13,769 bases of DNA, from the sequence record NC_028256.1. One strand, 5' to 3'. Position 1 is the stretch's first letter. Every line of letters starts with the position of its first letter. Under the pieces are notes generated by a model, which had not been told where the DNA came from, made no database searches, and worked only from the letters and a program-made list of their open reading frames with translations. Of the stretch, positions 2,845 to 7,303 are shown one piece after another. The position numbers and the translations under genes are program-made.

Positions 2845-3168
2845 TTAGAGGCCTGAGGCTACAGCGCTGAATATGATGAAGGCGAACGCTAGGCTTACCG
2901 CCAAGTACCCGTATATTATTGCTAGGGCTATGGCAGCCCTTCTCAGGCGTCTCCCTGGGGGGGCTATGGCTACCCACAGGGCGGCCGCGGCCATCGCTAC
3001 GGCTGCCGCCGCCTGGCCCGTCGCCCCGCTCCCAGTCGCGAGCGCTATTGGGAGCCCGAGCAGGGTTAGGGGTGCTCTCACGGCATCCCCGCCTAGAGCC
3101 ATGCCCAGCAGCGTGAGCGGCATGTATAGTGCTGTGAGGAAGAGGAGGGCTGGGACGGCCCTTTCCAA
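2845..3168 (-). CDS. Multi-pass membrane protein (107 aa)
   Basis: Three to four Ala/Leu-rich hydrophobic segments. TTG start preceded by GGTGG; TTAATTAA TATA-like box at 3204-3211. Confidence 0.7.
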   Translation of the reverse strand: MERAVPALLFLTALYMPLTLLGMALGGDAVRAPLTLLGLPIALATGSGATGQAAAAVAMAAAALWVAIAPPGRRLRRAAIALAIIYGYLAVSLAFAFIIFSAVASGL

Positions 3169-3220
3169 GCGTGGCCACCAAAAAATCTGGGGGGTTTAGG
3201 GCGTTAATTAAGGGCTACAG

Positions 3221-5257
3221 CTAGGAGGGCTGGAGGGAGATGCTCTCGATCACGCCATAGGCTTTAACGAAGACTCCAGAGACCTGTAACAGCGAGGCGT
3301 CGGCCAGAGCCTTCAGACCTACCTCGACATAGTAGTCGCCAGCACCTAGCTGGAGGTTGTTCAGCTCGAAGGACAGGGTTTTCACCCCCTCCATACCAGG
3401 GGGTAGATCCTTCTCGATAGTTACTACAGTATCCTCTACATGCTTTATCAAGTTGCCGCTGGGATCGTAGAGCTTCACAACGGCTATCACGTAACCCGTG
3501 TTTCCATAGCTGTCAACACCGTAGTAGTACACCATCATCAGGATCCTGAGAGTGTAGCTGCCGCTGGCTGGTGCATTGAGCCTAACCTTGCTGTAGGCAT
3601 ATGCCCATGCATCCTCGTATATATCGCTAAAAGCAGCTACCCTCAGCAGCCAGCCGTCTCCCGAGACACCATAGTCTGCATAATAGCTTGTTAGACTGAG
3701 GAAGCCAGTGCTGTCTCCTCCAGTCTCGACAAGCTCCCCGCTCCAGAGCGCCTTCGGCTCCTGCAGAGGGTCTAGGGGAGACCTCCCGAGCCTCTGAGCC
3801 AGGTCCAGGTACAACTTGAGGGCCTGCACCGCCAGGATGGTGCTCTCGCTGTTCACTACGGCAAAGGGCCACTCGCTGGGCATGGGTCTCAATGCTTCTC
3901 CCACATCATAACCTAGAGTTGCCAGGACTCCAGTTACAGAGTCGAGGCCGCTTGTAAAAGTGTCCAGGATACCCCAGGCGCTAGGTTTTGAGACGAGGCT
4001 GCCTATATCATAGGCGGCGGGCCACCATCCCCTGAATAGGGCTAGCCTCACAGGGCCCCAGGGTGTGTCGTGCTCATAATCCCACTGTAGTCTGACAAGG
4101 ATGCCAGCCAGCCTATCGGCCATATAAAGTATGTCGTTGCCAGCCACCCACCTATCACCAGTCGTGTCATAGTACTTTACCAAGGCTGCCAGCAGAGTCG
4201 CATTGAGATATACTGGATAACCCTTGTAGCTCCAGCTAAGCCCGTAAACATTGGCCTTCTTGAGCCCGTACCCATCCCATCCGCCCTCTATAATTGCCTC
4301 TGCGATTAGCTGCTCCGCTTCGCTCTGAGCACTGGCGCCATACTTGTCAAGGAGATGCATAGCTCTAAGTAGCTTATGTAGGGGGAACTCCTTCCACCCA
4401 GAGATAGCCTCGTTGAAAAGGCCGAGGGAGTCGAGAATGTAGATCCTGCTCTTGTAAGGATAGTTAACCAAGTAGTCGCCCACCTGCCAGGGGTGCCCTT
4501 CATAGCCGTTCCAGGAGAGCCAGGTGCTGTACCTGTAGTCGAAGAAGCTGTCTGGATACGTTTTACTCCTGCCAAAGAGCGGCGCATACACGTCGTAGTT
4601 AAAGTCTACAACATTGTCCCAAAGCTCCTTCATCTTACGTGGATAGTAGCTGTAGCCCTCGTCCTCCAGCAGCCAAGCCGCTATTATGGTGCTGTGCCTG
4701 AGGACGTATCTCGCACTGTGGAACTTGTAGTCGTTCCCCTCATAGATTGTTTTGGTGGTGCTCCAGCCCTGTGTAACGCCGTAGTACCAGTACGATCCTC
4801 TGGTGCCTAGCGCTAGGTCGAACTGGTATTCAGATTCGTCGACGTATACTAGTAGCTCGTCAGTATTGTAATCAACGTTAGTGAGCGATGCATAAATCAC
4901 TATGTCATAGTCGCTGTCGCTGTCGACATTGAAGTAGTATCGCCACGCTACCATATTGTTTGTGACGCCAACCAGCTCCGTCTTGTAATATTTGTCGCCA
5001 GGATCTAGGAAGCTACCTGGAACATAGAGTTCGCCGTTGTACTTAACCATGATTGTCGGGCTGGGGTAATCTGGCATTACGTAGTAGGTGCTACCGTTAA
5101 CGTCTACGGGCCTGATGGCATCGAGAACTGCCTGGACACCCAGGTCTATCGCATTCTGCACGTCAGTCAGCGTCAGCCCGCTGGCCTTCACTGGTACAGC
5201 ATAGAGTATCGCCTGCGCTAACAGGAGAGCGACCAGAGCTAGAGACGCCACCCTCAA
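3221..5257 (-). CDS. Large secreted/virion protein (678 aa) with a probable (alpha/alpha)-barrel core and beta-rich domains; candidate receptor-binding or glycan-active protein
   Basis: N-terminal signal peptide (MRVASLALVALLLAQAILYAVPVKA), Tyr/Trp/Gly rich. Helical repeats such as NATLLAALVKYYDTTGD...ADRLAGILVRLQW and NSESTILAVQALKLYL resemble six-hairpin glycosidase/prenyltransferase-type barrels. TTTTAAA at 5276-5270 upstream. Confidence 0.85.
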   Translation of the reverse strand: MRVASLALVALLLAQAILYAVPVKASGLTLTDVQNAIDLGVQAVLDAIRPVDVNGSTYYVMPDYPSPTIMVKYNGELYVPGSFLDPGDKYYKTELVGVTNNMVAWRYYFNVDSDSDYDIVIYASLTNVDYNTDELLVYVDESEYQFDLALGTRGSYWYYGVTQGWSTTKTIYEGNDYKFHSARYVLRHSTIIAAWLLEDEGYSYYPRKMKELWDNVVDFNYDVYAPLFGRSKTYPDSFFDYRYSTWLSWNGYEGHPWQVGDYLVNYPYKSRIYILDSLGLFNEAISGWKEFPLHKLLRAMHLLDKYGASAQSEAEQLIAEAIIEGGWDGYGLKKANVYGLSWSYKGYPVYLNATLLAALVKYYDTTGDRWVAGNDILYMADRLAGILVRLQWDYEHDTPWGPVRLALFRGWWPAAYDIGSLVSKPSAWGILDTFTSGLDSVTGVLATLGYDVGEALRPMPSEWPFAVVNSESTILAVQALKLYLDLAQRLGRSPLDPLQEPKALWSGELVETGGDSTGFLSLTSYYADYGVSGDGWLLRVAAFSDIYEDAWAYAYSKVRLNAPASGSYTLRILMMVYYYGVDSYGNTGYVIAVVKLYDPSGNLIKHVEDTVVTIEKDLPPGMEGVKTLSFELNNLQLGAGDYYVEVGLKALADASLLQVSGVFVKAYGVIESISLQPS

Positions 5258-5347
5258 GGCGCATCGGTGTTTAAAATATCAAGGATAATGTCTAGTCTAT
5301 CACTAATTCATGGCCGCTCTAGGCTACTCTAAACAGCTTCCATCGCC

Positions 5348-6353
5348 TTAAATCCGTCTGGCCAGAGCTACAGCTCTCGCCAGGGCGATTGCAGCCGCCA
5401 GGGCCCCTCCAGCCGCTGCAGCCGCCTCGGGCAGACCCCAGTACTGACCCCTTGCCTTAGCCTCTGCAATGTACTGCTTGGTAGAGTTGTACAGGTAGTA
5501 AGGGTCCTTTATGGCTGGGTCGTTAGCTGGCTCTATGAAAGTGTTCTCATGGTACTCGTTCCAGCTAGTTATGGCTATCAATCTCACTCTGTCAAGGTTG
5601 CGGAGCACCCATTCCCACTGCCTCTCGTACCAGCCCTGGGATAGGTCGTAGTCTATAGAGAGGCCAGGGCTCCTGAAGTGGTCATCCCTATAACGTGGGG
5701 TGAGGACAACATAGCCGTCCCTCCTCACCCTCAGCTCCCCGCTCAACGCATTGTCGTAGTCTGGCCAGTAGTCCCAATCCTGGTAGCCTGCACTGTCAAT
5801 GTCATTACCTACTATCCTGATTGCGTAGCCAGGGAAGTCGGGCCTCGGGTCGTATGCCAAGCCTATAGGGTTGAACGCCAGCACCAGGGGCTTGCCGTCC
5901 AGCCTGAGATATGCTCCTGGGTAGCGGTCGATGAAATTTTGCTTTATATAAGCTAGGGTCTGCTCCCAGAACGCCCTGTCATACCTCGAGGGGTCGTTGC
6001 CGAGATAGGGCTCAACGAATATGGCGGCCTTGAGTCCGTAGAGCTGCGCCCTCCAGAACACCCTCCTAGCCGCCTCGTCCTCGAAGCCCCCTGGCCCCCA
6101 CCACGATATGAAGAGGCAGTCTATGCCAGCCTCCCGCATCCTCTGGAGCTGCCAGTCGATAACCCTAACGTCCCTGCTGTCGTAGAGGCCGATAACAGGC
6201 ACTGCAAGAACAGTGCTGTCCCAGTGCCTCCCATCACCGCTGTACCATGGGTAGAAGTAGACGCAGACTATAGGCTGGCTAGAGGAGTATACCGTGATGG
6301 GGGCTGTAGATAGTGCTAGCAGGAAAAAAGAGTAGTGCTGCTTCTCTTCTCAC
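5348..6353 (-). CDS. GH99/GH71-like glycoside hydrolase (endo-alpha-mannosidase family) with signal peptide and C-terminal membrane anchor; frameshifted at 6324-6329
   Basis: GH99-type motifs: VYFYPWY (in frame upstream of the track's 6202 start), GLYDSRD, AGIDCLFISWWG, FVEPY and ITSWNEYHENTFIEP (ExxE catalytic pair). The SD-led GTG at 6353 is in a different frame; removing one T from the T6 run yields a 334-aa protein starting MRREAALLFFLLALSTAPITVYS. Confidence 0.85.
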
Positions 6354-6355
6354 GG

Positions 6356-7024
6356 CTACCTCCCCAGCTTGCCTACAATACCCACCATCCTGTCGAGAAT
6401 CTTTATGACGACACCGAAAACAGCAACAACAACCAGCAGCGGCATCACGGCGGCTACAGCCTCTGTTATAGCGCTGGGGTCGTACATGGCGCTATAATCT
6501 GGCTCCGTCGACAATGTTATACTGCCAGCGGTGAAAGCCTGGGTGGTGCCGTCAGGCGTGTGGGCCCATATGTCGGCTAGGCTAGGCGCATTTATGTTGG
6601 CTAGCTCGTACAGCAGGTTTCCAGCGTCGTCGTAGATCTGAAGCTTGTCCTGGCGGTACTTTATTGTAAGCCCTGCTAGCTGGCTCCAGTCCCCCAGAAC
6701 TACGTCAGTCGTGACGCCTAGCGCAGGGGCCTGTAGCACTATGCTCCCGCTGGTCTTGAAGAATAGAATCAGCACCTCATTAGCGGCTGAGTCCCTGAAG
6801 CTTAGTGCCAGGTTGTCGGTTGCTGGGGCGTTTGTAGTGGAGTCTATGTTAACCTGCAGCCCGCTCCAGGCGACGGTTATCAGTGCTGGAGGGTCTACTG
6901 GGAAGCTGTATGTCTGGTTGACTACTGTAGCGTCTATGGTTACGCTGGCCGCTGCCAGGGCTGGCGCTGCTGGCGCCACCAGCAGTGCTATAGCTATTGC
7001 AAAAGCGACTAGTGGGAGCTTCAT
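6356..7024 (-). CDS. Putative minor virion protein (222 aa): signal peptide, beta-rich ectodomain, C-terminal TM helix and basic tail
   Basis: MKLPLVAFAIAIALLVAPAAPALAA leader, NQT sequon, C-terminal AVAAVMPLLVVVAVFGVVIKILDRMVGIVGKLGR. Confidence 0.8.
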   Translation of the reverse strand: MKLPLVAFAIAIALLVAPAAPALAAASVTIDATVVNQTYSFPVDPPALITVAWSGLQVNIDSTTNAPATDNLALSFRDSAANEVLILFFKTSGSIVLQAPALGVTTDVVLGDWSQLAGLTIKYRQDKLQIYDDAGNLLYELANINAPSLADIWAHTPDGTTQAFTAGSITLSTEPDYSAMYDPSAITEAVAAVMPLLVVVAVFGVVIKILDRMVGIVGKLGR

Positions 7025-7045
7025 GGTAACCCCCTCTAGCGCGGT

Positions 7046-7303
7046 TTATGTGAAGCTCCTGAACACCCTCTCTATCACGTCGAAGATCTTCATTAGGAAT
7101 ATCAGGGGTATCAGCAGGGCGAAGAGGCTCATTATTATCGGTAGCATCTGGTTTATTATGCTTGTCATGTCTGTAGTCGTGGTCTGGCCGAGCACTGCAA
7201 GGGCTAGGGCTACGCCCGCCAGGGCCCTTGCCTTGAAGCCTGTGGCCGCGTGTTTGATGCTCTCTCTAAGGCCTGCCAGGGCCCTCCTTAGCCTACCTAT
7301 CAA
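7046..7303 (-). CDS. Candidate major capsid protein (85 aa, hydrophobic alpha-helical)
   Basis: First gene of the leftward structural operon. Basic N-terminus, hydrophobic leader, then amphipathic helix, hydrophobic helix and basic tail (DMTSIINQMLPIIMSLFALLIPLIFLMKIFDVIERVFRSF). SD-like GAGGCGGT before TTG. The MCP role is inference. Confidence 0.7.
   Translation of the reverse strand: MIGRLRRALAGLRESIKHAATGFKARALAGVALALAVLGQTTTTDMTSIINQMLPIIMSLFALLIPLIFLMKIFDVIERVFRSFT

Follow-up and report, generated by a model that had tools for sequence, protein, structure and literature searches.

A secreted toroid protein of the ovoid archaeal virus APOV1 that may recognise and process glycans of the host envelope

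How archaeal viruses pass the S-layer of their hosts is largely unknown. The tailspike (end-filament) protein VP4 of the spindle-shaped betafusellovirus SSV19 was resolved by cryo-electron microscopy, and its core is an (alpha/alpha)6 barrel that resembles a GH76 endo-mannanase of B. thetaiotaomicron, with an Asp69-Asp70 pair (Han et al. 2022, PMC9351363). SSV19 virions were later found to hydrolyse the host N-glycan and to release mannose (Yuan et al. 2025, PMC12042106); this is so far the only virion-borne glycan hydrolysis shown for an archaeal virus, and it was assigned by inference to the toroid domain. According to a 2024 review, no enzyme that degrades the S-layer had otherwise been identified in archaeal viruses (PMC10791045). 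APOV1, an ovoid virus of Aeropyrum pernix, is placed with the fuselloviruses by gene-sharing networks and has a 10.5-kDa major capsid protein and two unidentified minor ones (PMC5882108). We analysed a 13,769-nucleotide stretch of its sequence record NC_028256.1 (hereafter the window; positions are counted from its first letter), and in particular orf9-678, the largest gene of the virus, which occupies positions 3221..5257 on the minus strand with a TTG start at 5257 and encodes 678 amino acids. It is annotated as 'hypothetical protein' in HE580237/NC_028256, and we found no published discussion of it in the literature. With a probability that we put at roughly 0.55, orf9 is a secreted, probably virion-associated protein that recognises and probably processes glycans, and it would represent a toroid family that is new and has no name yet, filling the role that the VP4 core has in fuselloviruses.

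The predicted product of orf9 begins with a signal peptide (residues 1-26, 5180..5257; all orf9 features given here lie on the minus strand) that has a hydrophobic core and a cleavage-type site between VKA and SG. Its sequence points to the Sec type, and the homologues carry a similar peptide. Two AlphaFold models were built: model 1 used orf9 with an alignment of close homologues, A1 (predicted local distance difference test, pLDDT, 83.3; predicted template modelling score, pTM, 0.70), and model 2 used residues 27-500 with the deeper alignment A2 of 59 sequences at about 20% identity and a mean column identity of 13% (pLDDT 85.3, pTM 0.90). The modelled parts are a first helix (residues 30-47), an all-beta part (49-171), a helical part (186-490) and a beta sandwich (507-678). 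Together with the structural comparisons below, they predict a signal peptide, an (alpha/alpha)6-type toroid that is split after its first helix by a beta domain, and a terminal beta sandwich. The first toroid helix was assigned to residues 27-48 (5114..5179), the toroid alignments beginning at residue 26-32. The inserted beta domain, present in both models, comprises about 125 residues (49-175, 4733..5113), and an ESM Atlas search with it gave no usable match. The remainder of the toroid spans residues 176-495 (3773..4732) by structural comparison of both models, and a short linker joins it to the C-terminal sandwich (507-678, 3224..3739). About 10-11 clear helices were counted in the toroid, and the predicted ring may be degenerate.

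A first-pass annotation made from the sequence alone had described the open reading frame 3221-5257 as a secreted, aromatic-rich protein of 678 amino acids with alpha/alpha-barrel-like repeats and a beta-rich C-terminal domain, and this description held in all its parts. The reading frame is the annotated orf9-678, Y, W and F make up 14.9% of its residues (Y alone 9.3%), and both the signal peptide and the all-beta C-terminal domain were recovered, and the guessed barrel corresponds to the (alpha/alpha)6-type toroid predicted by AlphaFold and the structure searches. The stretches quoted as helices, NATLLAALVKYYDTTGD (residues 352-368), MADRLAGILVRLQ (379-391) and VNSESTILAVQAL (468-480), are all present and are helical in model 1 (helices 349-366, 376-390 and 470-490). 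The quoted acidic loop, VDSDSDYD (residues 111-118, 4904-4927), lies within the inserted beta domain and is moderately conserved, since F109, N110 and D118 are nearly invariant and the middle Asp positions vary; it is possibly a calcium-binding loop.

By structural comparison, the modelled toroid belongs to the six-hairpin/(alpha/alpha)6 class (Pfam clan CL0059-type). VIA-align, run against a library of 48,161 PDB representatives, aligned residues 28-492 of orf9, that is from the first helix to the later helices, with the beta insert mostly unaligned. The AGE epimerase 1fp3 scored 15.2 (244, 4.5 Å) with model 1 and 13.4 (249) with model 2; the cellobiose/glucose 2-epimerases scored 14.5-15.2 and 12.9-13.2, respectively, and the GH15 glucoamylases 13-14 and 11.1-11.4. 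GH76 mannanases scored 10-12.4, GH88/105 enzymes 11-12, terpene cyclases 12-12.5 and TED domains about 10. The closest neighbours were enzymes in nearly all cases, and the families that had been named by eye (AGE, GH76, GH88, prenyltransferase and TED) were among the best of them. In the ESM Atlas, the language-model features and the Atlas model of the protein each returned six-hairpin-clan families only (PcRGLX toroid, prenyltransferase, TED, GH127, AGE, GH88 and GH76). We count this as independent support for the toroid fold.

Likeness to the AGE enzymes (N-acyl-glucosamine 2-epimerase, cellobiose 2-epimerase and the sulfoquinovose isomerase YihS; PF07221) does not extend far into the sequence, with 8-11% identity to orf9 and no match of the PF07221 hidden Markov model (HMM) to orf9 or its relatives. 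Those among the matches act on free sugars, whereas orf9 is predicted to be secreted and carries the beta insert and a domain like a carbohydrate-binding module (CBM). H188 and H301 are conserved in the orf9 family and are at best candidate counterparts of the catalytic His and Glu residues in the AGE pocket. The glycosidases and phosphorylases of GH15, GH63 and GH94 have, like orf9, one beta-sandwich domain and one (alpha/alpha)6 toroid; their beta domain precedes the toroid, whereas that of orf9 is inserted after the first toroid helix. The C-terminal sandwich itself is modelled as a CBM-type beta sandwich that resembles CBM61, CBM4 and CBM6. It also matches the distal domains of the CBA120 TSP4 and Klebsiella K2-2 tailspikes, many phage fibre proteins, and Bdellovibrio Bd1399. 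Foldseek with the whole model against PDB and viral structures gave mainly short matches of 160-200 columns, of the kind that VIA-align and the ESM Atlas place on the C-terminal sandwich. At the sequence level the likeness appears as weak, scattered Pfam hits (PPC, Wzt_C) in relatives only.

A word-based protein search returned 19 full-length or nearly full-length homologues at 35-65% identity, none of them interrupted by stops. Those with names all belong to the Desulfurococcales (Pyrodictium abyssi, Thermosphaera, Staphylothermus and metagenome-assembled genomes, MAGs). These homologues and the RNA-library contigs described below show that orf9 is a real gene and not a chance reading frame. 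An exhaustive profile search at E<=1e-3 extended the family to 152 cluster representatives; among those with names are MAGs of Nitrososphaeria, Woesearchaeota and Actinomycetota. One group holds many proteins of about 500 amino acids with only the beta domain and the helical domain; the members of another exceed 1000 amino acids and have extra Flg_new_2, PEGA or CarboxypepD_reg domains. The core shared by the family is covered by no Pfam model in any member. The tblastn search of INPHARED phages with orf9 found APOV1 itself only and no fusellovirus, and the scan of IMG/VR found no relative. Full-length copies were present in 5 of the 201 Desulfurococcales genomes sampled, a rarity that fits a provirus gene, as expected.

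Within alignment A2, S270 is invariant (59/59 sequences), and R183, R187, H188, D222, Y266, Y268, K/R271, H301, K305, D381, Q391, E462, N469, E471, T473 and Y483 are kept in 48-59 of the 59. Several of the conserved residues stand at or just before the N-terminal end of a predicted helix, as in the motifs RHST (helix from 186) and NSEST (residues 469-473, 3839-3853; helix from 470); D381 lies inside the helix that starts at 376. In six-hairpin toroid enzymes, the pocket is found at the N-terminal ends of the helices. The set formed by R183, R187, H188, D222, S270, H301, D381, E462 and E471 looks like an active site, as judged from the alignment. Pairwise identity among homologues is highest in the toroid (59-67%) and lowest in the C-terminal sandwich (33-40%), a pattern typical of a conserved working part that carries a variable specificity domain.

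Comparison with VP4 brings out both likenesses and differences. Each protein is the largest that its virus encodes; the two viruses are small, integrate, infect hyperthermophilic Thermoproteota, and carry an SSV-type integrase and a DnaA-like gene. The first toroid helix directly follows the signal peptide in either protein, and the (alpha/alpha)6 core, a predicted one in orf9, contains inserted domains: the toroid of orf9 is split by the beta insert, and in VP4 the core residues Asp69/70, Tyr640 and Trp1033 are far apart in the sequence. They have in common a 'KYG ... TGD/N ... A..LA..L..Q' hairpin and, near the last helix, NSEST in the orf9 family stands where VP4 has the invariant NSETQPW. 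On the other hand, orf9 is much shorter (678 against 1236 amino acids), lacks the Asp-Asp pair of VP4, and has a CBM-like C-terminus and a GH99-like gene as partner. VP4 is heavily N-glycosylated, whereas only two N-X-S/T sequons were found in orf9. The C-terminal hydrophobic stretch by which VP4 is seated in the capsid is absent from orf9, which is followed by a separate gene for a protein with three transmembrane (TM) helices. Membership of the VP4 family was rejected, since BLASTP of orf9 against VP4 returned nothing and three hhalign comparisons remained at 8-10% probability. We regard the link between the two proteins as a functional analogy, with remote homology possible.

The identical protein record of the host genome, P0004, has 676 amino acids and starts at GTG 5251, two codons inside the TTG start. 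A TATA-like box, TTTTAAA, lies at 5269..5275 on the minus strand, 12-18 nucleotides upstream of the TTG/GTG start, and suggests that orf9 has its own promoter and a leaderless or nearly leaderless mRNA. An ATG at 5262-5264, between this box and the start, is out of frame. In one study, three samples gave error-free RNA-library contigs that cover essentially the extent of orf9 (3171-5213, 3409-5212 and 3173-5132). Most of orf11-12 (6274-7242) is likewise covered in two of these samples, and a short stretch of orf11 in the third; the interval 5288-6271, where orf10 lies, has no contig in any of them. Such contigs cannot prove transcript ends, and a coverage hole alone proves nothing; nevertheless, that all three samples repeat one pattern speaks against mere carry-over of DNA and agrees with a promoter of its own for orf9. 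A run from a second study is uninformative, a single contig spanning the entire region.

The gene upstream of orf9, orf10-284 (5348..6202, minus strand), encodes a GH99-like protein (PF16317, E 1e-16) with a C-terminal TM anchor. Its WNEYHE motif is invariant in 30 homologues, and the two Glu in it are the counterparts of the catalytic pair of GH99. The relatives of orf10 have 335-350 amino acids, and the homologous frame of APOV1 is open upstream to about 6322, but neither a start codon nor an intact signal peptide was found in it up to that point. Since these are missing and no RNA contig covers 5288-6271, orf10 is probably dead or unexpressed in APOV1. GH99-like proteins 56% identical to orf10 occur in Aeropyrum camini and in another A. 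pernix strain (P0222, P0223), and from these sequences Aeropyrum has further copies of the enzyme outside APOV1. A complex prediction with orf9 27-678 and orf10 1-258, made with no controls, scored 0.01 and speaks neither for nor against binding.

Synteny was determined by searching the fetched loci with every APOV1 protein (tblastn). The order orf12-orf11-orf10-orf9 is kept in proviruses of Pyrodictium abyssi, Desulfurococcaceae MAGs and Ca. Calypsonella navitae, and the APOV1-like proviruses show the succession capsid gene, orf11, GH99, orf9 and small 3-TM protein. The conserved block adjoins the orf17-19 replication genes and an SSV-type integrase; at the Pyrodictium locus an orf15-like gene is intercalated, and at the Staphylothermus locus orf10 and orf9 are the only matches to APOV1 proteins. 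The Staphylothermus GH99/orf9 pair (L011 5804-8837) matches the APOV1 proteins piecewise, a sign of frameshifts in both genes, and it looks like part of a decaying provirus. The GH99 and orf9 homologues are neighbours in most fetched loci and share one contig in at least 9 cases, and this conserved pairing supports a functional module. The two-component module with GH99 that the first-pass annotation proposed is supported as far as the pairing goes; for APOV1 itself it is weakened by the state of orf10.

Directly downstream of orf9 lies orf8-107 (2845..3168, minus strand), which encodes a small protein with about three TM helices. A multi-TM protein of about 107-189 amino acids follows orf9 in APOV1, Calypsonella, a Desulfurococcaceae provirus and a further Desulfurococcales MAG (L009 10128-10484; L004 10211-10537; L010 10097-10666), and in the frameshifted Staphylothermus copy (L011 7980-9353) the orf9-like reading frame carries the TM segment at its C-terminus as a fusion. 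No sequence similarity was detected among orf8, the 108-amino-acid protein of the Desulfurococcaceae provirus and the fused Staphylothermus tail, which are alike in position and TM pattern only. From the conserved position and the one fusion, orf8 is a candidate membrane or capsid anchor, or partner, of orf9.

In the Desulfurococcaceae MAG proviruses, a protein of the Fusello_VP2_Capsid family is encoded just downstream of the orf9/3-TM pair (L004 10613-10858, L006 5063-5314); Pfam detected no counterpart in APOV1. Judged from sequence, this gene is one more tie between gutta-like and fusello-like viruses. A distant family member of 506 amino acids, with the beta domain and toroid only, is found in a metagenomic element with homologues of orf18 and of the DnaA-like orf19 (L007 2957-3653, 8001-9521), together with many unannotated small genes and AbiEii/HEPN genes. 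The toroid family seems to travel with the orf18/orf19 replication module well beyond the Desulfurococcales. Another distant member lies in a virus-like element with an SSV-type integrase and giant neighbouring genes, and one bacterial member adjoins a pectate-lyase-fold protein.

Taken together, these data can be assembled into a working scheme. As a product of what would be the late (structural) gene block of APOV1, orf9 would recognise, and probably cleave or otherwise modify, a glycan of the host envelope at entry or release. The variable C-terminal sandwich would dock on a surface sugar, and the conserved toroid pocket (the nine residues from R183 to E471 listed above) would provide chemistry or tight binding, so that orf9 would do for APOV1 what the GH76-like toroid core of VP4 does for SSV19. 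It could work beside the membrane-anchored GH99-like enzyme in those relatives whose GH99 gene is intact, and attachment to the virion would perhaps be mediated by the downstream 3-TM protein. Specificity for a glycan, virion attachment and the stage of action are deduced from these comparisons, and catalysis we infer only from the conserved polar set. A bolder version, which we consider doubtful, is that orf9 stands for a new CAZy-type family of glycan-cleaving toroids using E462/E471/D222 chemistry, with which gutta-like viruses and other archaeal viruses that have an SSV integrase would open the host envelope and which would have a common ancestry with the VP4 core.

Several observations weigh against orf9 being a virion-associated glycan-processing protein. 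Searches of Pfam, NCBIfam, PHROGs and PDB sequences with orf9 alone and with profiles matched nothing, and so provide no sequence-level tie to any glycosidase or lectin family. The consecutive Asp-Asp that defines GH76 endo-alpha-1,6-mannanases (6U4Z, 4D4A, 6SHM) is absent from orf9; the one acidic pair that is both adjacent and conserved, E198-D199, is restricted to the close family. PF03663 (GH76) did not match orf9 at E<=10 and matched one of the 59 relatives at E 0.009, and GH76 membership was rejected because the Asp-Asp pair is absent. With residues 27-500, Foldseek found nothing in PDB below E 1e-3; its top, non-significant rows were bacterial GH15, GH63 YgjK and GH94 (E >= 0.006). VP4 was not among the top 50 structural matches, and the 8-10% hhalign values, obtained with the A1 and A2 profiles against the VP4 family profile A3, point the same way. 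Attachment to the virion is left unexplained by orf9 itself, in which no hydrophobic segment was found beyond the signal peptide and which has no membrane anchor, and the classical N-glycan target may not exist in the host. The earlier idea of a glycan-active enzyme keeps the conserved polar set in its favour, but no known glycosidase motif or family HMM goes with it.

The last of these points concerns A. pernix, one of two archaea without the oligosaccharyltransferase AglB (PMC8993221). We searched the host genome G053, a single contig of about 1.7 Mb that carries orf9 at 100% identity (C1:482633-484669), for STT3/AglB and obtained no candidate; STT3 candidates were found in four hosts of related proviruses. 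Because the host has no STT3/AglB and orf9 has only two sequons, S-layer N-glycans of A. pernix, the target proposed at first, are a doubtful one. An O-linked or polymeric glycan is possible instead, as is a module that works fully only in the hosts of the relatives.

Three other explanations have to be set against the proposed glycan-processing role. An unlikely one is that orf9 is a non-catalytic adhesin or structural spike whose toroid and sandwich bind a host glycan or protein, or form a rigid scaffold of a terminal structure of the virion; the conserved residues would then serve binding and folding and not chemistry. In keeping with this, orf9 shows neither a known catalytic motif nor an Asp-Asp, no family HMM matches it, and its C-terminal domain resembles non-catalytic CBMs and fibre tips. 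Toroids that are not enzymes exist, for instance TED and haptocorrin, and enzyme-derived viral structural proteins can lose their activity (PMC12042106). However, two near-invariant Glu, three Asp, two His, two Arg and an invariant Ser, kept at about 20% identity, are more than binding usually needs, and nearly all the best structural neighbours of orf9 are enzymes.

It is less probable still that orf9 is an enzyme secreted outside the virion by lysogenic or induced cells, which would remodel the cell envelope or an extracellular polymer for virion release, for receptor destruction (superinfection exclusion, anti-aggregation) or for a nutritional benefit to the host. A signal peptide with neither a membrane anchor nor a capsid-binding segment would suit such an enzyme, and so would an apparent TATA-like box of its own, RNA contigs in cultures of unknown induction state, and bacterial family members in cellular, non-viral contexts. 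But orf9 lies in the putative capsid gene block and is covered by RNA contigs along with orf11-12; its C-terminal domain, of tailspike-tip type, varies more than any other part, which is also seen in receptor-binding proteins, and an anchor is at hand in the 3-TM protein encoded downstream, which is fused to orf9 in one relative. Finally, it is very improbable that the toroid performs a chemistry unrelated to glycans, like that of terpenoid cyclases/prenyltransferases, of thioester (TED) proteins or of LanC. Neither a DD pair nor DxDD nor DDxxD occurs in orf9, and terpene cyclase and prenyltransferase were rejected for want of the latter two. The gene encodes no cysteine at all, so that a thioester, Zn(Cys) or a GH127-type Cys nucleophile is impossible in the mature protein, and TED, GH127 and LanC-like chemistry was rejected on this ground. 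Moreover, a secreted orf9 would be away from isoprenoid diphosphate substrates, and it is paired with GH99 and with a CBM-like domain.

The occurrence in another virus family of a second toroid protein, unrelated in sequence to VP4 and conserved with a GH99 partner, suggests that viruses of hyperthermophilic archaea repeatedly use toroid glycan tools for entry or egress. With no Pfam model for its core, the family is also a candidate new family of thermostable carbohydrate-active enzymes, and orf9 provides a testable host-interaction protein for the sole cultured betaguttavirus. The mismatch with an AglB-less host points to an unknown surface glycan in Aeropyrum. Should the bolder version above be true, ovoid and spindle-shaped viruses would be linked by a common entry module, and A. 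pernix, although it has no AglB, would display a surface glycan that is as yet undescribed.

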